Assembly (NCBI GenBank): GCA_002269645.1
Contig: NIVC01001366.1
Span: 1-64,000, forward strand
Direction of reading: 5' to 3'
DNA from: Macrostomum lignano
Lineage: Eukaryota
Length of the DNA: 64,000 bases
In this document: piece after piece, positions 1 to 49,715 of the stretch
How positions within the stretch are numbered: position 1 is the stretch's first letter
Layout: every line of letters starts with the position of its first letter
The notes under the pieces: generated by a model
What the model saw: only the letters and a program-made list of their open reading frames with translations
Told to the model about the DNA's origin: nothing
The model's database searches: none
Position numbers and translations under genes: made by a program

Positions 1-270
1 CACTGGCAAACTGCCGACTCGATGCTTTCCTGGACGAAACAGCAACAGGCCCAGTCTACCCGTGTTGTGCTGCAGCCAAGAAACACATTGCTGGTGCCGG
101 CAGGGTGGATCCATGCAGTCTTCACACCCAGGACTCAGTGGCATTTGTGCAACTTCCTTAGCGTCATGGCACGAATACGCACATTGCCGTGACTCAATCA
201 GAGGAGAGCACCAAAGTCGCAGAGCAGTTTCGATTTCGGAATTTAAAATTTATCCTATGGCACTTTCTGA
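1..270 (+). pseudogene. JmjC histone-demethylase domain fragment (KDM2/KDM7-like), frameshifted; continues beyond the window start
   Basis: Frame 1 reads RVVLQPRNTLLVPAGWIHAVFTP. After frameshifts come DSVAF, CNFL and EESTKVAEQFRFRNLKFILW. This matches the TLxIPxGWIHAVxTPxDSxxFGGNFL...FRFP pattern of KDM2/7 JmjC domains. Confidence 0.7.
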
Positions 271-469
271 TTGGCTTCTTAATACTGGAAATTTAGAAAA
301 AATGAAACTTACTAGGTTAAGGAAACCTATCGAAATGGAGAAACAATGCGCCGGACGAGCTCGCTGAACGATTGCAAAACATATTGCAAGGACTTTCGGA
401 GTTGAAGGAAAAAAACTATGCCAACAAGGCGTGCGTTGAAGCGAAAGTGACCGATTTGATTGATTTCAA

Positions 470-880
470 ACAATTAACAGATAACCTATCGAAATTACAA
501 TTACTGTTTTATAGTTAATAGTTCTTTAATTGTTATAGTTGTTATAAGCTATAACCAGGGGCGGCGGAGCCTAACATTTTTGGGGGGGGGGGGCACTGGG
601 CACAGGGCAAAGGGGCACAGGTACCTTTGTAACTGCTAATTAGGGCCTAAAATCAGAAAAGCACAACAAATTGGACTCATTTTCTGGGGGGGGCACAAGC
701 TCCCGCCGCCCATGGCTATAACTATAGATATAAGCTACAACTATAAGCTATAATTGATAGATTATAGTTGCTATAATTTTTAATACTTGATATACTTGAT
801 ATAGTTGTTATAGTTGTTATAGTTGTTATAGTTGTTATTGTTTTACAGTCAATAGTTTTTATAGTTATACAATTATTGTT
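470..880. repeat. Low-complexity (GTTATA/CTATA)n tract
   Basis: Degenerate gttata/ctata units on both sides of the MITE at 556-714. Confidence 0.7.
556..714. mobile_element. hAT-type MITE, 159 bp, 8-bp TSD
   Basis: Termini CAGGGGCGGCGGAGC and (reverse complement) CATGGGCGGCGGGAGC. Direct repeat GCTATAAC at 548-555 and 715-722. Confidence 0.8.
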
Positions 881-1146
881 AGTTTGTTACAGGAACAAAA
901 AGGAACACTAAGTTTCGTTAACTTAATAAGGTGATCAATGTCATGATTCATCACCAGGATTTGGCCGGATAATAATTTTATCTGTAGCTAACCTATTCCG
1001 AATTAGGAACCCTCTCACCCAATTGATGTAGTCTGATGTAGACTGATCCTGCGTCTCCTACGTCTCCTGCGGCTGCTCCTGCTGCTGCTCCAGCTCGGCT
1101 GGTCGTAGCGCCTGCTGCTGCTGCTCGCGCTCGGCCGGTTGTAGCG

Positions 1147-1149
<3 letters not shown>

Positions 1150-1180
<31 letters not shown>

Positions 1181-2090
1181 TTGTTGTTGTTGTTGTTGTT
1201 GTAGATGTCTAGCTGCTTTCCGGTGGTTTCCTCTTCCACCACTCCCACATCTTCAGCGCTTCCTCCGCCTTCATGCAAACCTCACTCAGAACTCCGCTCC
1301 TCCATCCCCTCCAGCAGCTGTCCAGAACCGGGCAGGCCACCATGTGCTCGATGGTCTCCTCCTCCATGCCACACTGCCTGCAATTTCCATCCTGCTGCAG
1401 CCCGATTCTCTTTCTAAACGCTGCCAGCTCCAGCGAGTGTCCCGTACGCCATCTTGTAAAACTAACCTCCTCCTTCCTGCTCGTGAACTCCGGATCTTTC
1501 CTTGGTCCCTCCGAGCCGCCGTACGTCGCCCTCATCCTCTCGTGCCTCCACACCTTCCTTCTACACCGCCTCCTCGCCATCCTCGCCATCGTGCTCGCCA
1601 TGACTCCAATTCCTTCATTGCTCACTTCCCTGACCGCCCGAATAGCCCATTCGTCCGCCACTTCGTTCCCTACGATCCCGCAGTGGCTCGGTATCCACAG
1701 CATCACCATCTCTCGCCCTTCCATCTCGCTCAGCGCTTTTCTAATGCTGCAGACGATCGGGTTCTTGCTGGTCTTTTTAATAGCTTTTGCTGTCTGTCGC
1801 AATCACAGCTTTGTGCCAGTTGTTGTTAATCGCCAGCCACCTGATTGCCGCCTTCAACGCGTAAAGCTCCGCCTGCATCGAGGACGCGAGCTGTCCGCCG
1901 GCCACCATTTGCCTTTCGACCACCGCGCCGTTATCGTACTTCCCCCTCCTTTGCCTCCCTTATCAACCGAAACATCCGTGAAGATCAATTTGTCCGCTCC
2001 GTCGCAAGCCGCTCTTATCCTGCTCTCTCCCATCCTCCTGCATTCCTGCTTCGTGTCTGGCCTTCCTCCCTCGTCATCGAATACTACGTG
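1150..2090 (-). mobile_element. 5'-truncated, frameshifted non-LTR retrotransposon (RNase H-bearing LINE, I/R1-like) with (CAA)n tail
   Basis: RNase H motifs IFTDVS, QAELYAL, IATDSKS and LWIPSHCGIVGNEVAD, then RWRTGH...CRQC..EETIEHMVAC (C-terminal Cys-His motif). Stop at 1209 followed by a (CAA)n(CAG)n tail. Confidence 0.85.
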
Positions 2091-2867
2091 AGAGACTTGA
2101 CAAAATTGACTAAACCTGACCGGCTTTCCTATTCTAACTGAGGGAGGGATGTTGTGTCTGAGACTAAAGTTATCTGTGGCCTTAGCTCGTGAAACATTCT
2201 AAATGTTATAAGAGTAATAATTAAAGCTCACGGCACAAAACGGGCTTCTTCAAGTTTATGTTGATAAAATACTTCCGATTTTCCAATTTTTCTGAAACTT
2301 GCGGTAGACACTTATGGGGCAACCAAAATTACAAAAACGCAACAAAAAGCGTAGAGAATTACCTGTACGGTTGATAGGATGATAATTTACTTAATTCCTA
2401 TTCTCTTAATGATGATCGGTGACAAAAAGTTTCTAGGAATACATATTCAAAAGTGTATCCACTAGACTTTTAAACCAGTAGCACATGTGCTAGAAGTTCA
2501 TTAGGCCAATGAAAATTGAATGTTACTATCTACAAATTTATACGCAATTGTCTGTTAAGTTCCCCAATAATAGTTTTTCAATTTAGTTTTAATGCATGTA
2601 CAATTTGCCACGTCACTGTTCGTTTTTTAAAAACTGCCACGTCACGACCCGCTCGATTTTTTGCACTTGCGCACTTTCACTTGCACCTAGCCAAAGCTAC
2701 CTTCCAACATTCGCACTTCGCACCTTTGCACCTGTCAACTCCCAGCCAGTAACCGTACAAGACTATATTACTCATTCTAGTGTATTAAGGCAGTAGCAGC
2801 ACTTGATTTCGGTAAGCAAATTCATTCGAGATTTAGTTATAGACTTCAACCAAGGTCTGATATAATT

Positions 2868-4046
2868 ATGTTGACTCTTTGGTGGATTCTCTCGTTTCTC
2901 GTGTCGTCTGATTCAGATGACTTGTTTGAGGAAGACGTCCAAGGGTTCGAGGAGCAATGGAACCAACTTATGGACAATCAAGCTGCTCGTGGTGCTGACC
3001 GAGAGGCTGTACCAGGGGGAGCTTGTGCGGCCAATAATGCGGACTCCAAAGCTTCTACGAAATCCAAAGATGTTGTCAAACAAGCTTCTGGTAAGCGTCG
3101 TGGGCGACCGGCAGCATCTACTAAAATGTTCAATGTAAATATTGAGGAAGCTCGGTATGTTCTAGATTATAATCCGACACACACCGCATTCATTACTCAA
3201 TTTCACGAAAGTGAGACTGAGGTTTTGCAATTCTTGGTTAGAATCGGACTAATCGCCAATACCATGTTGTGTTCGTCATGCTCGGGTCCAATGGGATTAG
3301 TCAAAAGATCAAGTGTGGCGGACAAATCAACATGGTATTGCAAGAGTTGCCGAACCAATACCTCAATTCGCACAAAATCGTTTTTTGAGCGGTCTCATCT
3401 TAGTTTGTTTCAGTGCCTTCATATCATCTTTTGGTGGGCTGCTGATATTGGTGACTTTGATTTTATTGCAGCAGAGACTAAGGTGTCCCAACAAACGCTA
3501 GTGGACTGGTTCAATTTCTGCCGTGAAATTTGTACCAAATATCTTGAAGACCATCCCTTCAAGTTAGGCGGTCCAAATAAAATAGTGGAAATTGACGAGT
3601 CCCTGTACTTCAAGCGTAAGTACAACAAAGGCCGTCAGCGTGAGCAGAAGTGGGTGTTTGGCATGGTTGAACGTGGTTCTACTCATATCTTTCTAATACC
3701 GGTAAAAGATTGTTCTGCAGCGACTCTTTTACCCATAATAGAAGAGCGAGTGGAGCCTGGCACAATCATTATGTCAGATGAATGGCAAGCTTATAATAGG
3801 TTGTCAAATCATCGGACTGTGAACCACTCACTTAACTTCGTCTCTCCTGCTGATCGTGATGTGCATACGCAATCAGTGGAATCCATGTGGTGTCACTGTA
3901 AAAAGAAGTACAAGCGTATGCATCGGACATCTGAGGAACTGTTTCAATCTTATCTGAATGAGTTCCAATTTCGACGGCTGCACAAAAAGAGTGTTATGGG
4001 GTCTCTTCTGTATTGGATTCGACACTACTATTCCTTCAAGGATTAG
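2868..4046 (+). CDS. Merlin/ISXO2-like DDE transposase, intact ORF (true start may be a downstream Met)
   Basis: Zn-ribbon CSSC...WYCKSC; DWFNFCRE; GPNKIVEIDES (D1); KRKYNKGR; WVFGMVERG; IMSDEW (D2); HRTVNHS; VHTQSVESMW (E); YLNEFQFRR. Confidence 0.93.
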   Translation: MLTLWWILSFLVSSDSDDLFEEDVQGFEEQWNQLMDNQAARGADREAVPGGACAANNADSKASTKSKDVVKQASGKRRGRPAASTKMFNVNIEEARYVLDYNPTHTAFITQFHESETEVLQFLVRIGLIANTMLCSSCSGPMGLVKRSSVADKSTWYCKSCRTNTSIRTKSFFERSHLSLFQCLHIIFWWAADIGDFDFIAAETKVSQQTLVDWFNFCREICTKYLEDHPFKLGGPNKIVEIDESLYFKRKYNKGRQREQKWVFGMVERGSTHIFLIPVKDCSAATLLPIIEERVEPGTIIMSDEWQAYNRLSNHRTVNHSLNFVSPADRDVHTQSVESMWCHCKKKYKRMHRTSEELFQSYLNEFQFRRLHKKSVMGSLLYWIRHYYSFKD

Positions 4047-4544
4047 TAACTTCTAATCCAATCCTGTCGTACTCAGCCTAGGTTCAGTTAGCAATCAGTT
4101 AATAATACTCAATGTAATATAAATTCAAAATTTGCGAAAGTTAAAAGACAACAGCACAGAAATAGAGGTTGAGGAAAAAATGTTCTGATTGATATCTGTT
4201 CGAATTCAGTTTGAAGAAATTCAAAAAGAAAAAATTAGTCTTCATCTTCTGCTGGTGATGTCAAAAATTCTTGATTTCGAGTGCTCGAGTCACCAGTGTA
4301 CGGAGTTCTAGGTGTAGAGCCTGTGGGTACCTGCTGATTCCAGCTGTTCTGCTGAGACATGTCACTCGTGTACAGACAGGCCTAGGTGTAGAGCCTGTGG
4401 GCATCTGCTGATTCCAGCTGTTCGAATCTCGTGAAAATGTTACCTGTGAAGTGGGATTCGGTTTGAAAAGTATATAATTATAACTGTCTTTGATTAAATT
4501 GAAGTGAACACTCATAAGAAGTATACAATAATAACTGCCTTTGA

Positions 4545-5858
4545 TTAAACTAAAGTGAACACACATTTTCGAAATAAACTAACCTCTTTGCTTCCGAAAC
4601 GCAGTCTTATTCTTCGCATGTTGTTAAACTGGTGAAACATTCGTTCGGGGTAGTGTAATGTCATTTCTTCATCATGTGATGCTTGCTGCTCAGGTGGTGG
4701 AATCTGTGTCGCTCGCACAGCCTCGAAATGCTGCTGGCTAGCTGTGGCGCCGTTGTACCACTCGGTTAGGTCGGAGAACTCTTGCGAATTTTCTGGCCAG
4801 TGATGTACTTCTGCTTGCGAACAGCCGAGGCTTATCATCTGGGCGTACTCTTGGACTTGAGAGCCATGAATCGCGAGAATGTCGCCGATAGACCAATTAT
4901 TCACCTGCGCAGAAGAACTGGCCCAAAAAGTGCAGGACACAGAGGACCCGGACCGATCAACGATGGTAACTTTTGCTAAATCGACGAGCTTTCCGGCACC
5001 AGTTTTTACTTCCTTTGGCTTCTCAACTGCAGAAATGATGCCACGAACGTCAACTTTCCTGTCGTACGGTGAAAGTTTTTGAGTAGGGCAAATTTAGCTG
5101 AATGACTAGCAATCAGCGCCCCCGTTGGGCAGCCAAAAAATGCATTACAAGTTTTTTAATAAACTACATGTAGCGTCTCTTTGCAATACCTCAGCAGTCC
5201 CTTGTAAGCCTTGGCATGTTAGCAATTCCCCCCACAAGCCTTAGCATATCAATTTCCCCCCTTGACATCTCATCGATGCCCCCCTCCCCATTAAGCCTTG
5301 AAATCTTAAAAAATCGGTCAAGCTTTTAACCCTAACCTCAGCCTAACTCTAACCGTAACCCTAAAGTAAAGCAAAGCACGAGGAAATGTATAAAAGAAAA
5401 TAAAGGCACAAAGTGCAAGATATTTACGTTTTCATTTGGCATGCAGAAATTTCCGATATCCTCCTGTAGTCCCGGGGACGCCTGTTGACCGTCTCGTTTG
5501 AAGTCATGATGGTGCCGCTTTTGTCAACTGAGACGCTCATCTCATACTCGTTTTCCGTAGTGTTGTACCTTGGGTCAGCCTTTTTGATCCAGCCTCCAGA
5601 AATGCGCACTGTCTCGACCGTTTGGCACATTTCCAGCAATGACTTCAGGTCCTTGCCAAAAACGCTCACTCTGATGTCTGCAGTCTCGTCAGTCAAAGTG
5701 AAGGAGAACACTTGGCCTGATCCAGCTTTGTTGTTCTCGTAGGCGTGGATTTTTGTCAGTCTCGTTATCAGACCAACGACCGGTGAATCCATCAAGCCGG
5801 GCAGAAGAGCAGAGATGCCGAATTTGACCTTCTGGGCTGGCGTAGGGTTTGATTCCAT
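4545..5858 (-). CDS. RPA70-like ssDNA-binding protein (OB folds A and B only), 2 exons 5858-5428 and 5058-4545, about 314 aa; transposon cargo
   Basis: Exon 1 has GSGQVFSFTLTDETADIRVSVF...ADPRY...EYEM (DBD-A-like). A phase-2 intron (AC|GTAAAT...GACAG|G) joins in frame to KVDVRGIISAVE...IVDRSGSSVSCTFW...ILAIHGSQVQEY...DLTEWY (DBD-B-like). A possible extra donor GAG|GTTAGT near 4583 could lead to a third exon around 4440-4230. Confidence 0.82.
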
Positions 5859-6787
5859 TTCTCTTCGTTACTTAAAGAATCTAAGTTAAAAGTAGATAAA
5901 AGTGATGCTTGACTTGAAACAGTTGAGGCGAAAAGTTTACTGCATTTACAGTTTGTTTTTATTATATATTGCAGCCCTGCAGCCACCCCTTCGTCCCAAA
6001 ACAACTCTCAATATTTTCTCGCTGCCGTCTGATTGGTCAGCATCTCGACTTTCTGTTATAGCCTTTTTCTTACCGTCCACTCTATTCTATTTTTTAGTCA
6101 CCCCTGTTTGTAAATTTTAGCCACCTTTATAATTTTGGTGGCCTCTGATTGGTCCGCTGGTTTAGGCTGGGGTCGATTGGGGGCTGCAGTCAGCGCCAAC
6201 CCCTCCGCTGGGTCGAACTGGATCGCTGAGACTTTTTTCATGCAATTACTTTATTTGGGCTGTTTACGCGTGCCGCGGAAAGTTATTGATTTTTTGGACT
6301 ACAAGAACAAATACTAACAGATATAATATCAAATTATATAATAATAACTTTTGTTATTTTTTACAAAACAAAACTGAAACTTACACTTAAACTTAAAAGT
6401 GCATTTTGTAGCTAAATTTTCACGACAGAGGTAGAGAGACACCAGATAAAATCAATAATGAGGTGATTAAGTATGATGTCTCACCCTCATTGTCCACTGA
6501 AAACAAAATATAGGCTTATTAGGCTGGGCTGGGGAGTTAGGTGATTGGTTAGAAATAACTCAGGAATCAAAAGCCGACAGGGTGAGCCAATCATTGCTAG
6601 AGATAACAAGAGATTTGGGGGTGAAAAAACAGCAAATTTGGGGTGGTGGAGCAGGCAGCCATTATCTGGTTTTGGCCACTGTACACTATAGTATATATAA
6701 CCAACTCTGTTCTTAACAATTTCACTATACGCCCGAACAAAATAAAAAATAAGTTTAAAAGCCCACGCCAGTCTTTTTTCCAGTACT
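5859..6787. promoter_or_regulatory. Divergent promoter region between the two cargo genes
   Basis: ATTGG at 6032 and 6148, CCAAT at 6587, and TATATATAA at 6692-6700, about 90 bp upstream of ATG 6788. Confidence 0.5.
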
Positions 6788-7380
6788 ATGAATCCGTACC
6801 TAAGTAATCCCTACCTAAGTTATCCCAATCCCTATCCGTATCCCTATCCCTATCCCTATCCCTATCCATTTCCTGGTGTATTTTATCCCCCCCATCTACT
6901 GGGATGCCCTATCCCAACCCATACCCACCCCCTATTCTCCCACCGGCACCCTGGCCGATGCAGCAACAGCAGCAACAGCAAGAGGAGCAGCAACAACAAC
7001 AGCAACAACAACAACTGCAACAACAACAACAGCAACAACAACAACCGCAACAGCAACAGCAACAGCATCAACTGCAGCTACACTCGCGCTCAGCGCGAAC
7101 TCGATTTGTGAGAGACGAAATGCGCGCACGTAAGTTAATTGTATTACGAGTTTGTTTAGAGGGGTAGTTTTGACTAAATCAGTTTTCGTTTGACCACTCA
7201 TTTCGTGTGAAGTGAATATACGTCAAAACTAATATTGACAAATCTAATCGCTTTCTTTTCACAGTTGGACTCTGCAGATTCTGCCTGCGGCGCGGCCACA
7301 TTGCGGCAGAGTGCAGAGACCTACCTCGCCGCCGCAGCCGCAGCCGCAGCCGCAGCCGCAGCACTGTCGTTGAAGAATGA
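6788..7380 (+). CDS. Tyr/Pro-rich + polyQ + CCHC zinc-knuckle + RS-repeat protein, 2 exons (6788-7129, 7265-7380); about 152 aa with one G restored at 6901-6903, or 113 aa from ATG 6904; transposon cargo
   Basis: Donor C|GTAAGT at 7130, branch-like CTAAT near 7244, acceptor TTTCTTTTCACAG at 7264. The spliced product ends EMRALGLCRFCLRRGHIAAECRDLPRRRSRSRSRSRSTVVEE*, containing a CX2CX4HX4C knuckle. Confidence 0.75.
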
Positions 7381-7659
7381 ATCATTTTTTTAATTTCTGT
7401 GCTGTTAACTATTTGACTATTTGTATTTTGACTATTTATAACTATTTTTGCTGTTAACTAGGTTAAGTATTTGATTAAGTAAAAAATGGATTAAAAAATA
7501 AATAAAAATTTGATTAAGTGATTAAGTAAGTTAAACTACGACTAAAATGCTGAGTTAGGAGCACCTTAGGAGCACTTTACCAATTTAAGTAAAGTAAAGC
7601 TCTTTGTCTTATGATAAATCCGTTTTAATAATGAGTCTTTTGGTTTTTTTGGTTCTTCA

Positions 7660-7785
7660 AACAAAAGGAGCCACAATGTCATACATTAAAGAGGCACCAT
7701 GTAAAACATAAAAGAGCCGCCATGTCAAACACTAAAGAGCCACCATGTCGTACATAAAACAGCCACCGCGTCAAACATAAACATG
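7660..7785. repeat. Degenerate ~25-bp tandem repeat, about 5 copies
   Basis: Units of the form aaagagccaccatgtc..acat. Confidence 0.6.
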
Positions 7786-9197
7786 TCAAAACAGATAATT
7801 AAATGTAATAAATCACCAAAATAATTAAATGTATATAAATTGTGCAATGGGCTATCTTGTTGGTAAGCCTTTTGCAAGAAAATCATACAAGGCATGTGTG
7901 CAAAGAAATATTGTGCTAAATATTCGGAGTTGTCTTGTTGGTGAATGTAATTTAACGAAATTCACTCTTCATTTCGGCCTTCGTTCACAAGAATTCTATT
8001 TATTTATTGGCCAAAACTATACATTTACTATAATAATATATAAAAAACTGCCGAAATTTACTTTTTGTTTCTCATGCATTTTTTGTGTTAATAGTTTATT
8101 CTGATTCGGACACTACTAATAAGTAATAACTTTGGAAGTCACTTTTATTGGTATTCGCAGGAATGGACTGCGATAGCTTAATTATCGCATAAAGACTTTA
8201 AATTTTGGTGTATGTATTTTTTATGGAAAATATAATCTATAAGTAGAATAATCAATGAAATAAGGGCAGAGAAAATGGACGAATTCAACATTTTGGTGGT
8301 ACTGTTTAACAATGTATTAGTAAAGCAGCATAGTTGATATGAGTATGTATTCAATAAAGTCAAATTGAGCTGTTGAATGGATAATATTCCCATAAAAATA
8401 CACCAATTAATATTCTTTTGCTGCTGCACATTTTTGAAATTATAAAACCAATAAAAGATAACAGTCAACAGTGAGAAATAATCGAGGCCCTTTTAAGTCC
8501 TTCATTACTGATATAAGTTTTCGTACGATTTGCAGTCACCACTGAATTTAGCTACTAGGCTTATCCATTATTAACTTGACTTAAAATGGAGATTTGATAT
8601 GTAAAGTGAAAGACACTTTGAAGATTTTTATGTATATGTATTAAATCAAGATTCAAGAAGCAACATCTATTTGTTCTTGCCATTGTAACTTTTCATAAAA
8701 TCTGTTTTAAGGACCACTGCAGTACAAATATTGTTCGTTTTAGTACGCGTCATGCAGTTTATTCTGTATGTATGGTCATAGTAGGGCATTATTATAAAAA
8801 CAACAATTTTCGGCTCAAATTAATTTCAGTGCGAGTTGTCATCAACCAATGTGTATGTAAAAAAATGACTAATCTCTAGGTTACTGTTTAAAAATGCCTT
8901 AACTTATCATTTTTATTTCTTCACAGATAAACCTTACTTTCTGTGTGGCAAGTCTATTTATCTTTGTTTAAATACTAATACTGCATTCTTACGGATGTTA
9001 CATTGCTTTGTACAAATGTGCATGAAATGCGTAATTTTTATGCTATATAATTCTAATAAAAATCACAAAGAGATAATAGCAACCAAGAATCGCAGAGATA
9101 ATAGCAATACTTTTGTGAGTACAAACATATTTAATATGTAACAATAGAAAAATTTAGGAAAACCGTTTCAATTTGTCCCTTGCTTATTCGGCTTATT

Positions 9198-9312
9198 CTT
9201 GCTATCTGGGGGATGCTTGCTATCTGGGGGATGCTTGCTATCTGGGGGATGCTTGCTATTCGGGGGATGCTTGCAATCTGGGGGATGCTTGCTATGTGGG
9301 GGATGCTTGCTG
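9198..9312. repeat. 18-bp minisatellite CTTGCTATCTGGGGGATG, about 6 copies
   Basis: Direct reading of the sequence. Confidence 0.9.
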
Positions 9313-9687
9313 TCTTGCGATGATTTCTTTTTGCATTGCACTTCATTTGAGTATTTTGTCTGTTTTCTTTGTGAAGGCTTTATTTCGCTATCTTTTTGTT
9401 ACTTGTAGAGAACAGAGATTCTATACAGATGTCCCCCAACGGGGGGCGAAGATTGCTAGTTTGCCTCTGAAATTGAGTGTTGCTGTTGCCAAAATATGTT
9501 ACTATAAATTGTATCTTAGAGTATAAGTTATCTATATACTAAGCTATTTATTGAACCCCGGTGTCCGTTTGTCTAATTTGTCAATTGAGGATCAACATAT
9601 AAGATGCATTTAATAAAGGTGAGTGTTTCATTTAAGTCTTTTTCTTATATGCTATTTGTTGTAATACGGCGGAATTCATCAACACAT

Positions 9688-10290
9688 TTTTGAGTAGGTC
9701 TCCATGCCCTCTATTCAAGTTTATGTTGATAAAATCAATCCCCATGAAGAATCTCCCCACTCTAAAACCCCCCATTCCCCATGCCCCGGTGGTCGGTTTT
9801 GAGCTACGACCCCCCCCCCCTATTAGGATGGGAATAAATCAACACAATCTTGAATAGGTCTCCATGCCTCTATTCAAGTTTATGTTGATAAAATCAATCC
9901 CCATGAAGAATCTCCCCACTCTAAAACCCCCCATTCCCCATGCCCCGGTGGTCGGTTTTGAGCTACGACCCCCCCCCCCCCTATTAGGATGGGAATAAAT
10001 CAACACAATCTTGAATAGGTCTCCATGCCTCTATTCAAGTTTATGTTGATAAAATCAATCCCCATGAAGAATCTCCCCACTCTAAAACCCCCCATTCCCC
10101 ATGCCCCGGTGGTCGGTTTTAAGCTACGACCCCCCCCCCCCCCTATTAGGATGGGAATAAATCAACACAATCTTGAATAGGTCTCCATGCCTCTATTCAA
10201 GTTTATGTTGATAAAATCAATCCCCATGAAGAATCTCCCCACCCTAAAACCCCCCATTCCCCATGCCCCGGTGGTTGGTTTTAAGCTACA
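9688..10290. repeat. ~160-bp subterminal tandem array (about 3.7 copies) inside the Merlin element; each unit carries the TIR core
   Basis: Units start near 9690, 9851, 10012 and 10175, and each contains TTCAAGTTTATGTTGATAAAAT. Confidence 0.9.
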
Positions 10291-12044
10291 TATAATTGGG
10301 TTAAAGCTACCAAAAAATGGATCTCAAATTTGAAATCAGCACCATCAAAAACCCTTATAGAGACAAATTTATGATCCTATCAAAATTGCAACTATTTTAT
10401 CAACATAAACTTGAAGAAGTCCCACAAAACTTCTCAAGCGTAGTTTTGGGCCACTTGCCATCAAGTAAAACATTTGATTTCTAACCTTATGTTTGAGATC
10501 TCGGAGACTCAACAAACAGTAAATAGAGAGCATTAGACTGCTGCTGCTGCTGCTACAGCAAATTTAAATTGAAAAAGCAAGAAGTCGAAATAAAGAATGA
10601 CATGACAGATAGGCTGTCACGATGACAGAGTTCTCTTAATCTATATTGCTTTTATATAACATAGAACAAAAACTGTAAAGCATTGCCATCTAAACTGTAC
10701 GTCAAGTCTCTACTTTAAAGCTATGCTATGCAATAAAATAGGTCCCTATGGAATCTCTTTGCGAACAAATATTCCATATAGCTCCTATTAGGCATAGCAG
10801 AATCTGTCAGAAGTTGAACTTACCCAGTCAGGTCCTTTGCTAAAAAAAAACAAAGCCTCAGATTTGCTCGCTGCTCGCTCGCCTCTGCTGAATACAAGCT
10901 GGGGAAAGGCGCTCAGAATGAACTGCACTGCAACTGAGCCCACAGATCATAGGCTAAACTGGGGAGATTGCGAAAGCTGCTAAAATCAAAATTCTCAATA
11001 CAGGGCGCTAAAATCATAGTCTATGGCCGAGCTTCGCAACTAACCGAATTGAGCTAAGCAAATGATTAAGCGATAGGCTGTGTAAAGCGGTCAGTGTAGA
11101 GAAATAAGGTGGGGCGCCGGGCCCAAATTGGTATTTATGACATTGAATTGGAGGGGAGGGTTGAGTCCATGAGGCAGCGTTTGAGCCTGCCGCTGTACTT
11201 GCGCTAAATGACTAATTAAATGACTATTATTGAGTTATTGATTGCGTACATCTAGTGTGCACACCACCCCATTTAGTCCACGTGCGCCCCGCCACCGCCC
11301 CGCCAATAATTATTTTTTGTATCGATTTTGTTAGCATCGTTTATGACTAATAATATATCGAAACAGAGACATCGTTTATTTTACCAAATCATCGTGCTTA
11401 CTTAGTTGAACTCCTAAACAACGCGACAGTCCTAATAATAAACGGAGGGGTGGAATGCGCGGCTAAGGAAAGAGGCGAGATTGAGGAGCCAATCAGAAGG
11501 CAGCTAGGGAGAAAAAGATAAGAATAACAAGATTGAATTGGACAGAGAGGTCCAGAGAGAACGGGTCCATGAGAATTGGCCGCAGACAGGACGAACTGGC
11601 CGCCCAGATTTGCCGCAGTGCATTGTGCCCGTAAGCGAAAAGTTTTTCTCGCTGATGAATATTCTATAATATATCGTTAAAATACACTCAGCAACTTTGA
11701 AAAAGTCGACAATTCTATGCGCCAGTGAGCAATTTCTCTTGGACTTGGACTTTTATTCTGAAATAAAAGACATGAGAAAAGTGATCGGGGTAGCTTTAAT
11801 CCGCCCAACCCTCTCACATCGCTGCTCCACTTCATTCCTCAACTCAAGTCTGCCGCGGCGTAGCTGAGTTGCGACACTCGCAAAGATTGAGAGACTTTAC
11901 CTGCACTCTCAAAAGTGGCGACCACAGACGGAATCTTATGTGATTGCGACTTTTCGATGTTGCTGAGTGATATTTCCCGTAATGCTTAGCAAGTCCTAAT
12001 AAAGAGATTTAAAGAGATTTACCAGATCCAACAGCTGGCAACAG

Positions 12045-34220: not shown

Positions 34221-37200
34221 TCAGGCCAGCGGCTCCAGCTCTACGATCACGTCCTCCTCGTTCACCGTCTCCCCGGCTTTGAAGTGGACGGCTTTCACCT
34301 GCGGGCGAGAGGAGAGACCAATTGTGAGACTAGCTGTGAGCCTGGCTGAGACCGACTGGGACTGGCCATGAGACTGATTGTTGACTGGCCATGAGACTGA
34401 TTGTTAGACTGGCCATGAGACTGATTGTTGACTGGCCATGAGACTGATTGTTGACTGGCCATGAGACTGATTGTTGACTGGCCATGAGACTGATTGTTAG
34501 ACTGGCCATGAGACTGATTGTTGACTGGCCATGAGACTGATTGTTAGACTGGCCATGAGACTGATTGTTGACTGGCCATGAGACTGATTGTTAGACTGGC
34601 CATGAGACTGATTGTTGACTGGCCATGAGACTGATTGTTAGACTGGCCATGAGACTGATTGTTAGACTGGCCATGAGACTGATTGTTGACTGGCCATGAG
34701 ACTGATTGTTAGACTGGCCATGAGACTGATTGTTAGACTGGCCATGAGACTGATTGTTGACTGGCCATGAGACTGATTGTTAGACTGGCCATGAGGCTGT
34801 GAGACTCGATGTGAGACTGGATGTGAGACTGGATGTGAGACCGGATTTGAGACCGGCTGAAAGGAAAGAAAATCCCAAGTGACAAAACTCACCTTCCCAG
34901 CGATGGCGCAGCTCAGGCTGTTCTGCATCTTCATGGCCTCCAGCACGCAAATCTCCTGGCCCTCGGCCACCGTCTGGCCCACCGTGACGCCGACGGACTT
35001 CACCAGGCCGGGCATGGGCGCCTTGATGGTGGTGCTGGTGTCCTTGTCCGAGCGCACCGGCATGAACTTCGACAGATCGTAGGCGCGGGCCGTGCGGACT
35101 ATCGTGGTGCACTGCGGGAGGTGCGAGTTTTGCATAGCGACTCACCTTGGTGCCCATGCACAGCAGACTGACTCACCTTGGTGCCCATGTAATGCAGACT
35201 GACTCACACAGCTCACTCACCTTGTTGCCCATGCACTCCAGACTGACTCACACAGCTCACTCACCTTGTTGCCCATGCACTCCAGACTGACTCACACAGC
35301 TCACTCATCTTGGTGCCCATGTACTGCAGACTGACTCACACAGCTCACTCACCTTGGTGCCCATGCACTGCAGACTGACTCACACAGCTCACTCACCTTG
35401 GTGCCCATGCACTCCAGACTGACTCACACAGCTCACTCACCTTGTTGCCCATGCACTCCAGACTGACTCACACAGCTCACTCACCTTGGTGCCCATGCAC
35501 TCCAGACTGACTCACACAGCTCACTCACCTTGGTGCCCAGGTACTGCAGACTGACTCACACAGCTCACTCACCTTGGTGCCCATGCACTCCAGACTGACT
35601 CACACAGCTCACTCACCTTGGTGCCCATGCACTCCAGACTGACTCACACAGCTCACTCACCTTGTTGCCCATGCACTCCAGACTGACTCACACAGCTCAC
35701 TCACCTTGGTGCCCATGCACTCCAGACTGACTCACACAGCTCACTCACCTTGGTGCCCAGGTACTGCAGACTGACTCACACAGCTCACTCACCTTGGTGC
35801 CCATGCACTCCAGACTGACTCACACAGCTCACTCATCTTGGTGCCCATGTACTGCAGACTGACTCACACAGCTCACTCATCTTGGTGCCCATGCACTGCA
35901 GACTGACTCACACAGCTCACTCACCTTGGTGCCTAGGTACTGCAGACTGACTCACACAGCTCACTCACCTTGGTGCCCATGTACTGCAGACTGACTCACA
36001 CAGCTCACTCACCTTGGTGCCCAGGTACTGCAGACTGACTCACACAGCTCACTCACCTTGGTGCCCAGGTACTGCAGGGTCACGCGCTCATCGAAGCTGC
36101 GGGCCATCATCTGCATGCAGACGGACTCGCCGTTGATGACGGCCGGGATGACCTTGTCGGAGAGGCTGAAGTTGTCCTTGATCTGCAGAGTCTCGCTGCC
36201 CTCGAAGGCCACGGTGAAGCCGCCTTCCTTGTAGCTGACGCGGCACAGCAGGTCCTTGCCGTCCAGGGAGGCGACGATGTCCCAGTCGAAAGACTTCTTG
36301 GCCTCGCCGGCCACAATGTTGGACCGGTCCTTCTTCAGGTATGTCTTGTTGCGCAGGTCGTTCTTGGCGAAGACTACGGCGGACACGGCGGCGATGTTGA
36401 GCCGGTCGCGGTCGCTGAACTGCTTGCCGCGGAAGCCGTCCGGGTACACCTCCGGCAGGTAGTTGGTGGTGATGTCGCCGGACACGAAGCGATTCTCGGT
36501 GACGATGTCGCGCAGCAGGGGGATGTTGTGGGTGACGCCGCGGATCACGTAGTTGTCCAGAGCGTTGACCATGGTGTTGAGGGCGGACTGGCGGTCCTTG
36601 CCGTAGGTGACCAGCTTACAGATCATGGGGTCGTAGTAGATGGAGATTTCACTGCCCTCCTGGATGCCGCTGTCGCAGCGGACGTTCTCCAAGGCGGTGG
36701 GCTCCGAGTAGGTGGTCAGGCGGCCGATGGACGGCAGGCCGAACGCCTTGTAGGGGTCCTCGGCGTACACGCGGCACTCCACGGCCCAGCCTTTCACGCC
36801 GATGTCCTTCTGGGTGAGCAACAGCGGGTGGCCCTTGCCCACGCGGATCATCTGGTGCACAATGTCCACTCCGGTGATGCACTCGGTGATGGGGTGCTCC
36901 ACCTGCAGGCGGGTGTTCATCTCCAGGAAATAGAAGTTCTTCTTCGAGTCCACCAGGAACTCAACGGTGCCGGCGGAATCGTAGCCCACGGCCTTGGCCA
37001 GCGCGGTGGCCTGGGCGCCCATGGCCTTGCGGGTGTCGGGGTCGATGTACACGCTGGGCGCCTCCTCGATTACCTTCTGGTTGCGCCGCTGGATGCTGCA
37101 CTCGCGCTCGTTCAAGTACAGCGCATTGCCGTGGCGGTCGCAGAGCACCTGCACCTCGATGTGGCGCGGCTTGTCGATGAACTTCTCGATCAGCATGCGG

Positions 37201-38914
37201 TCGTCGCCAAAGCTGGACTTGGCCTCCTCCTGCGACAGCCGGTAGCCCTCGCGGGCCTGTTTGTCGTTCCAGGCGATGCGCATGCCCTTGCCGCCTCCTG
37301 CGGGGCGCGGCGAGGATCATTTCCTGGGATCTGACTGAGGGAGTTCCTGCGGATTCTGGTGGGCTATTTGTGGGGATTCTGGTGGGCTGTTTGTGGGGAT
37401 TCTGGTGGGCTGCTTGTGGGGATTCTGGTGGGCTGTTTGTGGGGATTCTGGTGGGCTGTTTGTGGAGATTCTGGTGGGCTGTTTGTGGAGATTCTGGTGG
37501 GCTGTTTGTGGAGATTCTGGTGGGCTGTTTGTGGGCATTCTGGTGGGCTGTTTGTGGAGATTCTGGTGGGCTGTTTGTGGAGATTCTGGTGGGCTGTTTG
37601 TGGAGATTCTGGTGGGCTGTTTGTGGGGATTCTGGTGGGCTGTTTGTGGAGATTCTGGTGGGCTGTTTGTGGGGATTCTGGTGGGCTGTTTGTGGGGATT
37701 CTGGTGGGCTGTTTGTGGGCATTCTGGTGGGCTGTTTGTGGGGATTCTGATGGGCTGTTTGTGGGAATTCTGGTGGGCTGTTTGTGGGGATTCTAATGGG
37801 CTGTTTGTGGGGATTCTGGTGGGCTGTTTGTGGGCATTCTGGTGGGCTGCTTGTGGGGATTCTGGTGGGCTGTTTGTGGGGATTCTGGTGGGCTGCTTGT
37901 GGGGATTCTGGTGAGCTGTTTGTGGGGATTCTGGTGGGCTGTTTGTGGGGATTGTGATGGGCTGTTTGTGGGGATTCTGGTGAGCTGTTTGTGGGGATTT
38001 CGGTAAGGACTTTGTAGGGATCTTACTATAGATTCGTCTGTGCCCTTCGGTTGGTATCTAACAAAGGCTGGAAATGATTAATTGAGCAGAGAAAAAGCAG
38101 CTCCAAAAATCCGGGAGAGTTTCTACGAAACAGCAAGAAATGCAAACTCAAGCATTAAAAATTGAATGCCAACGCGTTTCGTCCAACAGACGTTTTCAGG
38201 ACAGACAATCTTCACTTAATCAGCCATGTTCAATGCGTGCATTCAATATTTAGTGTTTGTGTTGACATTCCTCTCCAGCTCTAAGAAGCCGGGGCACTCA
38301 CCGCCGGCGGAGGCCTTGATCATGACGGGGTAGCCGATGTCGTTGGCGATCTTGACGGCCTCATCAGCGTCCTTGACCTCGCCGTCGAAGCCGGGGATGC
38401 AGTTGACCTTGGCCTTGTTCGCGATGCGCTTGCTCTCGATCTTGTCGCCCATGGCACGGATGGCCTTGGAGTTGGGGCCCAGGAACACCACGTCCAAGTC
38501 CTCCAGGCGCTTGGCGAACACCGTGTTCTCCGACAGGAAGCCGTAGCCCGGGTGCACCGCCTGGGCGCCCGTCTGCTTCACGGCTTGCAGGATGGCCTCC
38601 ATGTTGAGGTAGCTCTTGCTGGTCGGCGCCGGCCCGATGCAAACGGCCTCGTCAGCCAGCTGGACGAACTTGCTGGAGGCGTCGATCTCGCTGTGGACGG
38701 CCACCGACTTGATGCCCAGCCGCTTGCACGAGTTGATGACGCGGCAGGCGATCTCACCGCGGTTGGCGATAAGGATTTTCTCGAAGCGCGACTCGTTGCT
38801 GTCGTGCTTGTCGTTCCAGTAGATGGCCTCGGCTTGCCTGGCGGCAGAGTGCGAGCACAGGGTGCGCATGGCGACTGCGGCCGGGCCGCGGTGGGCGCTC
38901 AGAAGGCTCAGCAT
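34221..38914 (-). CDS. PCCA: Propionyl-CoA carboxylase alpha chain, mitochondrial; exons 38914-38302, 37297-36057, 35111-34893, 34298-34221
   Basis: [36 protein letters not shown] (joined across intron 1), [23 protein letters not shown], biotinylation motif EAMKM and C-terminal VKAVHF...VIVELE. All introns are GT-AG and in phase. Confidence 0.96.
34361..34795. repeat. 23/24-bp array in PCCA intron 3
   Basis: ACTGGCCATGAGACTGATTGTT(A)G, about 18 copies. Confidence 0.92.
35140..36077. repeat. 44-bp array (about 21 copies) in PCCA intron 2, made of the exon-2 end plus its 5' splice site
   Basis: Minus-strand unit CTGCAGTACCTGGGCACCAAG|GTGAGTGAGCTGTGTGAGTCAGT. Confidence 0.95.
37355..37998. repeat. 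23-bp array in PCCA intron 1
   Basis: GTGGGGATTCTGGTGGGCTGTTT, about 28 copies. Confidence 0.92.
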
Positions 38915-38967
38915 GGCAGCGGGGCAAGGGGTTGCAGAGGGGATTGGCGCGCGAGTTTAGCGTTCTA

Positions 38968-39950
38968 CATCTACCTGAAGTGGCTGTCGTCTCAAACCCC
39001 ATCTACCTGAAGTGGCTGCTGTCTCATCTACCTGAGATGGCTGTCGTCTCAAACTCCATCTACCTGAAGTGGCTGTCGTCTCAAACCCCATCTACCGGAG
39101 ATGGCTGTCGTCTCAAACCCCATCTACCTGAAGTGGCTGCTGTCTCATCTACCTGAGATGGCTGCAGTCTCAAATCCCATCTACCTGAAGTGGCTGTCGT
39201 CTCAAATCCTATCTAGCTGAAGTGGCTGCAGTCTCAAATCCCATCTACCTGAAGTAGCTGTTGTCTCAAATCCTATCTACCTGAAGTGGCTGTCGTCTCA
39301 AACCCCATCTAGCTGAAGTGGCTGCAGTCTCAAATCCCATCTACCTGAAGTGGCTGTCGTCTCAAACCCCATCTACCTGAAGTGGCTGTCGTCTCAAACC
39401 CCATCTACCTGAAGTGGCTATCGTCTCAAATCCCATCTACCTGAAGTGGCTGCTGTCTCATCTACCTGAGATGGCTGTCGTCTCAAACCCCATCTACCTG
39501 AAGTGGCTGCAGTCTCAAATCCCATCTACCTGAAGTGGCTGCTGTCTCATCTACCTGAAGTGGCTGCTGTCTCATCTACCTGAGATGGCTGTCGTCTCAA
39601 ACCCCATCTACCTGAAGTGGCTGTCGTCTCAAACCCCATCTAGCTGAAGTGGCTGCAGTCTCAAATCCCATCTACCTGAAGTGGCTGTCGTCTCAAACCC
39701 CATCTACCTGAAGTGGCTGTCGTCTCAAACCCCATCTACCTGAAGTGGCTATCGTCTCAAATCCCATCTACCTGAAGTGGCTGCTGTCTCATCTACCTGA
39801 GATGGCTGTCGTCTCAAACCCCATCTACCTGAAGTGGCTGCAGTCTCAAATCCCATCTACCTGAAGTGGCTGTCGTCTCAAATCCCATCTACCTGAAGTG
39901 GCTGCAGTCTCAAATCCCATCTACCTGAGGTGGCTGCAGTCTCAAATCCC
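38968..39950. repeat. 25/32-bp array immediately upstream of PCCA
   Basis: CATCTACCTGAAGTGGCTGTCGTCTCAAACCC and a shorter variant. Confidence 0.92.
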
Positions 39951-40231
39951 CTCTCATTAGCGGCAGCTCAACATCGCTATCCAGTGAACGAGTGCAGCTA
40001 AAAGCTAATTAATCTATAGTCGCAAAGATTGAACGAAAATAATCAAGTTGAAGCGCAGGAGAAGGCGGTACGGTTGGCACGCCATTTCATCGATGCAATT
40101 ATGTTTAGAAACAGCAAAATAAAATAGAAATCAGCTACTCACAAGTAGCAACAGGATAAATGAAATAAACTCTATGAACAGAGAACTCAATAGACTCAAA
40201 GAGCAATCGGGAATTTTCTGCAAAAGAATGT

Positions 40232-41416
40232 CTAGACCGGCCGCGCTGCGTGCCCGTCGCCCTTGCTGTGGCCCTTGCGGAAGCAGCGCCGGCAGTACAG
40301 GTCCCCCATGCACTGCGGGCAGCGGACCTCGGCATCCGCGTTGCAGATGCAGCACCAGCGCTCGCTGTCCGAGCCGGTGGAAACGTCCTCGTCGTCTGTG
40401 AAGTCTTCGTCTGGCGCGGCCAGGGCATCCCGGATGGCCGCTTCTACCTGGCTGTCGCTGACCTGTTCCGGCTGTGCCGGCTTTGCCTGTGCCGGAGGGT
40501 CGGCTGCCGCTGCGTCTGCCTTGCCTTTTTTCTGCTTCTGCTGCCGGCGCTGCAGGTGCGCCGCCAGTTCCGGGTCCGCCTGCAGTGCTCGGACCTCAGC
40601 CTCCGCGCTGCGCATCAGCTCGGCTGTCTCGCGGCTCAGCGCGTCCGCGTCTTCGGCATCTGCATCAGCTGATCCTGCCGCGGCTCCCTCGGCCGAAGCG
40701 GTCGCCGCTGCCGACTTGGCATCGGAGGCCTCAGCGGCAGCGGCGGTGTCCGCATCGACTCCCCGCAGGGCGGCCAGCCGCTCTCCCAGTCGCCGATCGC
40801 GAGAGGCGGCCTCGCGCTCCCGCTGCTGGTCGATGCGGGCCCGGGCTTGCGCCGACTCCATGAGCGCTGCCACCTGCTCCGCCTCTGACAGCTGCGGGCG
40901 CGGAGCCTCGACGGCCGGTGCAGCCAATCCAGGTTCCGTCTCGGCCGTCCGGCCCTGCAAGGCTTCTAGGCGAGATCGGAGGTCCTGGTCAGAGGGCGGC
41001 GGTGCCTGGCCAGGCCGCTGCTTCAGCCGCTCCAGGCGTTCCCGCGCGTCCCGGTCCGGGTCGGCCGCCCTGGAGCCACCGCTGCCTCCGCCGCCGCCCC
41101 TCTTTGCCGGCCCCGTCTGCCGTGCCTCCAGGGCCTCCACCCGCTTGACGAAGTTGGCGGGCGGCTCGATTGGCTGCTTGGCGGCAGGCGGCTGGGCCTG
41201 CTGGCGGAGGCACTTGGCGCACATTTTGCCCAGCTTGCCGTTCAGCTTGGGCACCGGCTTCTTGGTCTGCAGGCAGCGCGAGCAGTAGGAGAAGCCGCAG
41301 TTGTCGCAGCCGTACTTCCGCCGCAGCAGGGAATACTCGCTGCCGCAGCCGTAGCAGAACATGCGGGCGCCGGCTGCGGGTGGCATCGCTATTCGCTTAG
41401 TTACTCTGGTTACCAT
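40232..41416 (-). CDS. ZFYVE19: Abscission/NoCut checkpoint regulator (FYVE-type zinc finger + C-terminal B-box-like finger), intronless
   Basis: CYGCGSEYSLLRRKYGCDNCGFSYCSRCL; PPANFVKRVEALE; WCCICNADAEVRCPQCMGDLYCRRCFRKGH. Start could be 41416, 41386 or 41362. Confidence 0.88.
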   Translation of the reverse strand: MVTRVTKRIAMPPAAGARMFCYGCGSEYSLLRRKYGCDNCGFSYCSRCLQTKKPVPKLNGKLGKMCAKCLRQQAQPPAAKQPIEPPANFVKRVEALEARQTGPAKRGGGGGSGGSRAADPDRDARERLERLKQRPGQAPPPSDQDLRSRLEALQGRTAETEPGLAAPAVEAPRPQLSEAEQVAALMESAQARARIDQQREREAASRDRRLGERLAALRGVDADTAAAAEASDAKSAAATASAEGAAAGSADADAEDADALSRETAELMRSAEAEVRALQADPELAAHLQRRQQKQKKGKADAAAADPPAQAKPAQPEQVSDSQVEAAIRDALAAPDEDFTDDEDVSTGSDSERWCCICNADAEVRCPQCMGDLYCRRCFRKGHSKGDGHAARPV

Positions 41417-41479
41417 GGTTACTGTGTTTAACCGAAGCTATCGTTGTAATTACCCTCTACCATGACTGTCCCATCTTCT

Positions 41480-41825
41480 ACTATTACTACCCCATCCTCT
41501 GCCATCACTGCCACATCCTCTGCCATCACTACCCCATCCTCTGCCAGCACTACCATCCTCTGCCAGCACTACCCCATCCTCTGTCAGCACTACCCCATCC
41601 TCTGTCAGCACTACCCCATCCTCTGCCAGCACTACCCCATCCTCTGCCAGCACTACCCCATCCTCTGTCAGCACTACCCCATCCTCTGTCAGCACTACCC
41701 CATCCTCTGCCATCACTACCCCATCCTCTGCCATCACTGCCACATCCTCTTCCATCACTGCTTCATCCTCTACCAGCATTGCTTCATCCTCTACCATCAT
41801 TTCTTCATCTACCATCACTGCTTCA
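41480..41825. repeat. 21-bp array upstream of ZFYVE19
   Basis: CCATCCTCTGCCAGCACTACC and variants. Confidence 0.88.
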
Positions 41826-42205
41826 TGCTTTTGTACCGCTAATTTTATTATTTCGAAATCCAATTAACTGGGCCGAAGAATGAAAAATGAACCGCAAAGA
41901 AAGACAGTGAGTCAAATCCTTTTAACATAGAGCAGCAGATTATATTAAAATTTAGTGAATCAAAACGTTCAATAAACGAACATGCAGGTAGCGTCCAAAT
42001 CGAGGGAATTAAACAAACTGTACAGAATAAAAAGGCGGCATGCCGAGATACGCAGGGCAGTCTGGAGTACAAGCCAGGCGCAGCTGGCCACCGCTCCGGT
42101 TAAATAAAAACTGATAAATGTGGTATTCAGCCTACTGAAAGTAGCCGCTAGCGCATTCTTATTGAACAATCAGCTAAAGAGAAGGGCAATTGGAAGCAGG
42201 CGGTC

Positions 42206-42475
42206 TCAGTTAGCCGGGTCGCCGGGCGCGGCCTGCTTGCCCGCGGCCACCAGCTCGTCCCGTTTGATGCGCGCCTCGATGAAGTCCACCTTGCGCTCCA
42301 GCAGCGTCAGCTTCTCGTTCAGCTGGGCGATCTTGCTGCGGCAGGACACGTCGAACTGGTTCAGGAAGTCCGTCATGCGCTTCAGGGTGAACCCGATCAG
42401 GTCGATGTACTCCCGCTGGTTCCAGTCCAGCTGCACATCCTGCTGCACCTGGTCCATGTAGTTCGTGTGCGACAT
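42206..42475 (-). CDS. BRK1: BRICK1/HSPC300, SCAR/WAVE complex subunit, intronless
   Basis: VQQDVQLDWNQREYI...DFLNQFDVSCRSKIAQLNEKLTLLERKVDFIEAR. Confidence 0.94.
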   Translation of the reverse strand: MSHTNYMDQVQQDVQLDWNQREYIDLIGFTLKRMTDFLNQFDVSCRSKIAQLNEKLTLLERKVDFIEARIKRDELVAAGKQAAPGDPAN

Positions 42476-42505
42476 GGCGGCATCGGACGGAGGGTTGGTG
42501 TTTTT

Positions 42506-43090
42506 ACTGCTCCTGACACTGCTGCTCCTGACACTGCTGTTCCTGACTCTGCTGTTCCTGACTCTGCTGTTCCTGACCCTGCTGCTCCTGACTCTGCTGT
42601 TCCTGACTCTGCTGTTCCTGACCCTGCTGCTCCTGACACTGCTGCTCCTGACCCTGCTGCTCCTGACACTGCTGCTCCTGACTCTGCTGTTCCTGACTCT
42701 GCTGTTCCTGACTCTGCTGTTCCTGACCCTGCTGCTCCTGACTCTGCTGTTCCTGACTCTGCTGTTCCTGACACTGCTGCTCCTGACTCTGCTGTTCCTG
42801 ACACTGCTGCTCCTGACTCTGCTGCTCCTGACTCTGCTGTTCCTGACTCTGCTGTTCCTGACACTGCTGTTCCTGACTCTGCTGTTCCTGACCCTGCTGC
42901 TCCTGACCCTGCTGCTCCTGACTCTGCTGTTCCTGACTCTGCTGTTCCTGACCCTGCTGCTCCTGACTCTGCTGTTCCTGACTCTGCTGTTCCTGACCCT
43001 GCTGCTCCTGACACTGCTGCTCCTGACCCTGCTGCTTCTGACACTGCTGTTCCTGACCCTGCTGCTCCCCTGACACTACTGCTCCTGACC
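42506..43090. repeat. 15-bp array immediately upstream of BRK1
   Basis: CCTGACTCTGCTGTT and variants, about 38 copies. Confidence 0.92.
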
Positions 43091-49646: not shown

Positions 49647-49715
49647 GGTGGCTGCCGGCGCTGCAATGGGTGCGGATTTGGCTGGACTCAACTGGCAAGG
49701 GCGGCTGGGGTGGCT

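Follow-up and report, generated by a model that had tools for sequence, protein, structure and literature searches.

An RPA70-like gene between the terminal inverted repeats of a Merlin element in Macrostomum lignano probably belongs to a nested Helitron fragment

Does a cut-and-paste transposon of a flatworm carry its own gene for a single-stranded DNA (ssDNA)-binding protein? The question is raised by a 64,000-nucleotide stretch of the Macrostomum lignano genome (assembly GCA_002269645.1, contig NIVC01001366.1, positions 1 to 64,000 of the forward strand; hereafter, the window), in which a gene similar to part of RPA70 is located between the terminal inverted repeats (TIRs) of a Merlin element encoding a DDE transposase. 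An earlier note on this DNA had described the gene as cargo of the cut-and-paste element, and hence as a novelty, and had remarked that RPA-like genes are known in some Helitrons. The position of the gene within a DDE element was confirmed by the Merlin TIRs and an 8-bp target-site duplication (TSD). The cargo claim was not supported: the block carrying the gene is best read as the 3′ part of a Helitron, other copies of which occur with RepHel and without Merlin, and the remark on Helitrons turned out to be the actual explanation. We consider it about 90% probable that the RPA-like gene is an accessory ssDNA-binding gene of a canonical (HLE1-type) Helitron of Macrostomum (M. lignano or a species very close to it), and give a similar probability to window 4121–9459 being the 3′-terminal 5.3 kb of a Helitron of at least 14.4 kb, nested in the Merlin element. 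The gene was assigned to the Helitron because the block ends at a Helitron terminus and recurs with RepHel, never with Merlin.

The Helitron block and its genomic copies

The block and its terminus were delimited as follows:
4121–9459, plus strand: Helitron 3′ part, 5′-truncated, 5.3 kb, oriented by its 3′ terminus, with the RPA-like gene antisense within it
9433–9459, plus strand: Helitron 3′ terminus, a 5-bp GC hairpin (CCCCC-AAC-GGGGG) followed by GCGAAGATTGCTAG, with a T at 9460

The terminus reads CCCCCAACGGGGGGCGAAGATTGCTAG and represents a CTRR-type end (CTAG) with a GC-rich hairpin upstream. The right-hand limit of homology with the other copies falls exactly after the sequence ending in GTCCCCCAACGGGGGGCGAAGATTGCTAG and is followed by T; elements in loci L001, L002, L005, L006, L007, and L008 terminate in this motif as well. 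The left end of the window copy is missing: the sequence is truncated at 4121, no 5′-TC end is present, and RepHel was not found anywhere in the window by tblastn.

Eight loci (L001–L008) were fetched, and the lineage of the window copy was present in four of them—L002, L004, L005, and L006—all of the assembly GCA_002269645.1. Three loci (L002, L005, L006) match the whole of window 4121–9460 with 96.2–98.9% identity, and L004 matches window 4121–8329 only, with 97.8% and then 89.7% identity; counting the window, there are at least five copies of the 3′ unit. These four loci match nothing else within window 1–12000. Neither the Merlin transposase (tblastn) nor the Merlin arms (blastn) were detected in L001–L006, and a 22-mer internal to the Merlin TIRs was absent from all eight loci.

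Homology among the four loci runs far beyond the breakpoint of the window copy and reaches RepHel, encoded on the opposite strand; the RPA block is contiguous with RepHel in all four. The whole helicase is retained in L004 and L006, and a common 1.17-kb internal helicase deletion was found in L002 and L005. The two copies with both ends, L002 20797 to 6418 and L005 14600 to 235, are 14.4 kb in length; adding the 1.17 kb of helicase sequence that both miss gives approximately 15.5 kb as the expected length of the intact form. The layout of the family is 5′-TCCTATATAC ... RepHel ... RPA-like gene on the opposite strand ... GC hairpin-GCTAG-3′. Full-length copies start with TCCTATATACTAAAAATG (L002 20797, L005 14600), so that the family possesses the 5′-TC end lost from the window copy. 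The 3′ flanks are of three kinds: that of the window, that of L006, and that shared by L002 and L005. The first base after CTAG is T at every 3′ junction, and the base before the 5′ TC is A in L001; the 5′ junction of the window copy is lost.

Head-to-tail arrays were observed at L002 6418/6417 and 20798/20797 and at L005 235/234 and 14601/14600. In these arrays, the CTAG 3′ end abuts the TCCTATATAC / TCCTATATACTAAAAATG 5′ end of the next element with zero host bases between them.

RepHel of L001 was identified by Pfam matches to Helitron_like_N (E 2.8e-47), PIF1 (E 1.1e-62), and Pif1_2B. In L002, tblastn matches to RepHel were 75–86% identical; in L006, nucleotide matches to the RepHel region of L001 were 73–78% identical. 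Called genes with Helitron_like_N and STPRs domains were present in L004–L006. For the ORF (open reading frame) upstream of Rep in L001, an 'OTU' label assigned by eye was dropped, having no Pfam support at E ≤ 0.001.

A low-complexity ORF at window 6788–7170 (plus strand; L002 8696–9082), Pro/Tyr-rich and then Gln-rich, is conserved between copies and may be a captured host fragment.

The surrounding Merlin element

Both ends of the surrounding element and its transposase gene are preserved:
2234–2241, no strand: left TSD copy CACAAAAC, 8 bp, identical to 10423–10430
2242–2282, plus strand: Merlin left TIR, beginning GGGCTTCTTCAAG, 41 nt, pair I19, 90% complementary to 10382–10422
2868–4046, plus strand: Merlin transposase ORF, 392 aa, uninterrupted; Pfam DDE_Tnp_IS1595, E 4.1e-25
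9460–10381, plus strand: Merlin right internal part, holding four 161-nt subterminal tandem repeats at 9651–10293
10382–10422, minus strand: Merlin right TIR, 41 nt, pair I19
10423–10430, no strand: right TSD copy CACAAAAC, 8 bp

Merlin elements are recognized by terminal GG in the TIRs and a TSD of 8 or 9 bp (PMC8101967). The TIRs of the surrounding element start with GGGCTTC and GGACTTC and, together with the 8-bp TSD and the DDE_Tnp_IS1595 transposase, place it among the Merlin elements. The nearest relatives of the transposase are animal Merlin transposases (44–47% identical); candidate catalytic residues D, D, and E, assigned by eye from motifs, are located in EIDES (starting at aa 241), MSDEW (aa 302), and SVESMW (aa 336). 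Removal of the Helitron block leaves 1,879 + 963 bp of Merlin sequence (2242–4120 + 9460–10422), i.e., about 2.8 kb, the typical size of an autonomous Merlin; the Merlin–Helitron composite spans 8.2 kb.

The 22-mer mentioned above, TTCAAGTTTATGTTGATAAAAT, occurs within both TIRs and within each of the 161-nt repeats at 9651–10293, just inside the right TIR. It is found six times in the window versus zero expected occurrences. Judging from the sequence, the 161-nt repeats are possibly extra transposase-binding sites. A diverged relic of a Merlin right end (80–84% identity; part of the 161-nt repeat and the TIR) is located in an AT-rich stretch at window 56501–56745; no partner TIR was found for it.

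We failed to find a second copy of the window Merlin in the protein collection, where no transposase relative exceeded 47% identity and none was from Macrostomum; exact look-up in the same collection gave no record of the transposase protein itself.

These data bear directly on the idea that the RPA-like gene is functional Merlin cargo, the 8.2-kb composite transposing as a unit and the protein serving cut-and-paste transposition or donor-site repair. In its favor, the gene is flanked by a pair of 41-nt TIRs and, outside these, by a perfect 8-bp TSD; it adjoins an uninterrupted DDE transposase ORF, and both of its exons encoding OB folds are intact. However, the block ends at a Helitron terminus, its four other copies occur in Helitrons without Merlin sequence, and the search just described revealed no second Merlin copy; moreover, the gene has a frameshift private to the window copy, and its downstream sequence is truncated. 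We regard the cargo explanation as improbable. The link of the RPA-like gene to a DDE element is therefore one of nesting, and the finding is ordinary: it does not add a new kind of cargo to DDE transposons.

The RPA-like gene, its product, and its relatives

The gene is encoded on the minus strand and consists of three exons:
5960–6160, minus strand: putative promoter preceding the ATG, with a TATA-like stretch (ATATATAAT) and two boxes reading CCAATCAG
5428–5858, minus strand: exon 1, containing the start codon and the OB fold equivalent to RPA70 DNA-binding domain A (DBD-A)
5059–5427, minus strand: intron 1, GT..AG, 369 nt; spliced identically in P0001, the 370-aa protein annotated at locus L002
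5106–5129, minus strand: second Helitron 3′-terminus motif, CCCAACGGGGGCGCTGATTGCTAG/T, within intron 1; same place in L002, L005, and L006
4584–5058, minus strand: exon 2, containing the OB fold equivalent to DBD-B and a family-specific C-terminal region
4444–4583, minus strand: intron 2, GAG/GTTAGT ... CACAG/GT, 140 nt
4235–4443, minus strand: exon 3, encoding a predicted disordered tail; intact copies end SPAEDED; frameshifted in the window

Translation starts at the ATG at 5858. The donor GT of intron 1 is at 5427/5426 and its acceptor AG at 5060/5059; the reading frame is continuous across this splice. The earlier note had joined 5428 to 5058 to obtain a protein of about 314 aa with two OB folds and had given the gene an extent of 5858–4545. 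The splice sites and the OB folds were borne out, as were the two exons, while the 3′ end had to be revised: the 314-aa sequence is a read-through product, the end at 4545 resulting from read-through into intron 2, and a third exon follows at 4443–4235. The revision came from P0001 (M. lignano, 370 aa), which is 99% identical as a protein, L002 being a DNA copy of 96% identity. P0001 runs beyond ...RLRFGSKE into exon 3, ending with ...SPAEDED, and the equivalent splice sites in the window are the donor at 4583 and the acceptor at 4444. The 370-aa product length is recorded under several database accessions.

In the window copy, two extra nucleotides at 4378–4377 move the frame of exon 3 to a stop codon at 4263–4261. 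They are private to this copy, being absent from all four other genomic copies, and may be an assembly indel error; in silico removal of the insertion restored a protein of 370 aa differing from P0001 in two residues. The frameshift affects only the C-terminal tail, which was modeled at low confidence and is probably disordered; both OB exons are intact. Private frameshifts, each different, were found in three copies: the window, L005, and L006. Past the normal stop codon, only 114 nt of Helitron sequence remain before the truncation.

From a reading of the sequence, the CCAAT and TATA motifs upstream of the ATG constitute a putative promoter; the repeated motif of this region was also picked up as repeat entry D14. 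The Merlin transposase gene (plus strand) and the RPA-like gene (minus strand) converge at window 4047–4235 with their stop codons 188 nt apart, and the two transcripts could overlap in antisense.

The terminus motif in intron 1 consists of a hairpin and GATTGCTAG/T, oriented like the RPA-like gene, in all copies checked. Because of this motif and of the length of intron 1 (369 nt versus roughly 100 nt in the paralogue P0002), the intron may harbor a nested Helitron, short and non-autonomous.

Both OB folds were recognized in the 314-aa product by Pfam: REPA_OB_2 matched aa 134–217 (E 2.3e-12), and the OB-fold model tRNA_anti-codon matched aa 29–109 (E 1.2e-10); no DUF223 match was obtained in the same scan. 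A phmmer search against PDB returned human RPA70 DBD-A/B (1JMC, E 1.1e-14) across aa 15–219. The comparison of an AlphaFold model with RPA1, proposed in the earlier note, was carried out with AlphaFold2 and an input alignment of 95 sequences (a 5-sequence alignment gave a predicted local distance difference test score, pLDDT, of 40 and was unusable). The model had a mean pLDDT of 82.9, exceeding 90 for approximately aa 10–260, and contained two beta-barrels; its best PDB match in Foldseek was 1jmc_A (E 2.8e-18, target-normalised TM 0.79). In both sequence and model, the two OB folds are homologous to DBD-A and DBD-B of RPA70. Residues 261–370 were modeled as a short beta-hairpin and a low-confidence tail, which is probably disordered; a short conserved C-terminal module at approximately aa 280–310 was modeled with moderate confidence.

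The aromatic residues which the earlier note had assigned to ssDNA stacking indeed occupy conserved RPA70 positions. In columns read from the 95-sequence alignment, F51 corresponds to F in 79 of 88 canonical RPA70 relatives, Y98 to F/Y in 83 of 88, and W189 to W and Y215 to F/Y/W in all 88; the position of human F269 is occupied by I86. The absence of the N-terminal OB fold and of the zinc-containing DBD-C, also claimed there, was corroborated. DBD-A begins at about residue 15, where canonical RPA70 proteins match from about residue 170–230 onward, confirming the lack of DBD-F, and neither a Pfam match to Rep_fac-A_C nor a Cys4 motif was found in the sequence, confirming the lack of DBD-C with its zinc ribbon. 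The earlier description therefore holds: the protein is RPA70-like, borne by a transposon, limited to DBD-A and DBD-B, and would stand alone.

At least four diverged RPA-like lineages with open reading frames are present in the genome, 33–55% identical to one another. P0002 of locus L001, 44% identical to the window protein, is located directly downstream of RepHel on the same strand; this RepHel is apparently full-length, read as a chain of adjacent ORFs, and P0002 is followed by a GC hairpin and GCTAG/T. The third lineage (P0272/P0129 of L007 and L008) lies between a PIF1-helicase remnant and a hairpin-GCTAG/T end. All three lineages with an examined genomic context are Helitron genes. A Helitron derivative of about 3.5 kb, consisting of a helicase C-terminal remnant and the RPA-like gene, extends at L007 8245–11768 from a TC 5′ end to a hairpin-GCTAG 3′ end; its 5′ end motif recurs at 4815. 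L008 is similar, although the 5′ end motif was not found there.

Ten representatives were recovered at E ≤ 1e-30: Macrostomum or Logan sequences plus one trematode protein of 4022 aa. The next-ranked matches were canonical RPA70 proteins (E 1e-25 and weaker, approximately 17–26% identical), which align only via the DBD-A/B region. Judged by these searches, the family appears to be restricted to Macrostomum, plus the one trematode match, and nothing points to a recent capture from host RPA1. The trematode protein, P0125 of Calicophoron daubneyi (CAL8082275.1), contains 26 REPA_OB_2 repeats and was the top non-Macrostomum profile match (E 1.4e-195); the record describes either a true multi-OB protein of giant size or a tandem array merged into one gene model.

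Two explanations outside transposon biology were weighed against these data. The earlier note had itself raised the possibility that the gene is part of the canonical host RPA1, or its pseudogene, with other exons elsewhere. In sequence as well as in fold, RPA70 DBD-A/B is indeed its nearest characterised relative. However, identity to canonical RPA70 relatives is far below that among the Macrostomum lineages, the canonical matches are confined to DBD-A/B, and the gene is multi-copy (at least five loci at 96–99% DNA identity), has its own start and stop codons with a 370-aa product under several accessions, and resides within Helitron termini. The gene is not canonical host RPA1, an explanation that we rejected on low identity, multi-copy state, and Helitron termini and to which we assign practically no weight. 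The second explanation is that the host domesticated one or more copies of the Helitron RPA-like gene for ssDNA binding, in which case the window copy would be a host gene that has kept its transposon flanks. That four or more diverged lineages have persisted with open reading frames, that gene models exist in public annotation, and that promoter-like CCAAT and TATA motifs are present would agree with this. However, across 5.3 kb, including the non-coding sequence, the window copy shares 98.9% identity with another transposon copy, which indicates recent transposon amplification rather than a conserved host locus; the different private frameshifts in the window, L005, and L006 also argue against domestication. 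We consider it very unlikely, somewhat more so than Merlin cargo.

Known systems, genomic setting, and proposed history

RPA homologues have been described in Helitrons of plants, zebrafish, and sea anemone and in Helentrons of Drosophila (PMC4683698). In the HELIANO survey, the RPA domain was stably included in HLE1 and enriched downstream of RepHel, STPRs domains were almost exclusive to HLE1, and HLE1 insertion occurred between A and T (PMC11417382). The Macrostomum elements fit HLE1, having RepHel with STPRs and Helitron_like_N domains and an RPA gene in the 3′ part. As in HLE1 Helitrons, an RPA70-derived OB-fold protein is encoded beside RepHel in the 3′ part, and the elements have a 5′-TC end (in the family), a 3′ hairpin with CTAG, and a T directly after this end. 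Unlike the HLE1 Helitron RPAs, the Macrostomum protein consists only of DBD-A/B and a short lineage-specific C-terminal module, and the gene of the window family is antisense to RepHel.

Compared with human RPA70 (1JMC), the tandem OB folds of DBD-A and DBD-B and the aromatics at the F238, W361, and F386 positions are kept, whereas identity is approximately 21%, Ile occupies the F269 position, and DBD-F, DBD-C, and the zinc ribbon are missing, leaving no obvious route to a trimer with RPA32 and RPA14. The rice 'mother element' Mothra is a Helitron encoding RPA without RepHel (PMC4683698), and the Helitron-derived DNA of the window likewise keeps the RPA-like gene without RepHel. However, the Helitron 5′ end is missing from it, which marks it as a truncated remnant and not as a non-autonomous element that could be mobilised; L007 and L008, with a helicase remnant, the RPA gene, and the 3′ end (and the 5′ motif in L007), look like true short derivatives of the Mothra kind. 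Merlin and IS1595 elements are described with a single transposase gene; the extra gene in the present element comes from the nested Helitron fragment.

Regarding the remaining features of the window, an ORF at 1209–1802 (minus strand), immediately beyond the Merlin element, matched RNase H and zf-RVT weakly (E about 3e-4, short of the Pfam cut-offs) and is probably what is left of a non-LTR retrotransposon. GC-rich host exons interspersed with long coding-frame tandem repeats occupy approximately window 34600–52300. By eye, we take the ORFs there to be a biotin-carboxylase-type carboxylase (36009–38914, minus strand), an alpha-mannosidase-like gene (45274–48414, minus strand), and a WD-repeat gene (51512–52264, minus strand); exact look-up of these three host-looking products in the protein collection gave no match.

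The most likely history of the locus is that a Helitron inserted into a 2.8-kb Merlin and that the 5′ part of the Helitron was then lost. Because its left end and RepHel are missing, the fragment cannot move as a Helitron, and the RPA-like gene of the window is carried as a passenger by Helitron sequence that is dead. In an intact element, the 370-aa protein would coat the strand nicked by Rep and displaced by the Pif1-type helicase during rolling-circle transposition and would thereby protect or organise the single-stranded transposition intermediate. Because DBD-C, the trimerisation domain, is absent, the protein would act without RPA32 or RPA14. What the analysis showed directly is the anatomy of the elements, the fold, the conserved stacking residues, and the linkage to RepHel; the mechanism itself is inferred.

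Several points weigh against this reading. The terminal hairpin is short, and its folding energy was indistinguishable from that of shuffled sequence (z = −0.92); because the energy is not unusual, the terminus call rests on recurrence of the motif at element ends. L002 and L005 may not have arisen by separate insertion but may be duplicates of one locus in a polyploid genome. The RPA-like gene is antisense to RepHel in the window family and sense in both other lineages; an internal rearrangement or nesting inside the Helitron is conceivable. The order of events—Merlin, Helitron, deletion—was deduced from a single copy. The gene sits between the Merlin TIRs, and the Merlin transposase could in principle mobilise the composite. 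To our knowledge, ssDNA binding or a role in transposition has been demonstrated for no Helitron RPA.

We see only a slim chance that the 8.2-kb Merlin acquired the RPA module of the Helitron and moved, or still can move, as a unit; if true, it would be the first known cut-and-paste DDE transposon with an expressed RPA-like ssDNA-binding gene, obtained second-hand from a Helitron. With the nested Helitron as the preferred explanation, the locus mainly offers a correction: lying between the TIRs of a DDE transposon does not by itself make a gene the cargo of that transposon, and nesting explains the position of the gene here. The analysis also delimited well a young flatworm Helitron family with elements of at least 14.4 kb, head-to-tail arrays, and several RPA-like lineages, some copies of which are intact. 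These intact copies could serve for the first biochemical test of the function of a Helitron RPA-like protein.

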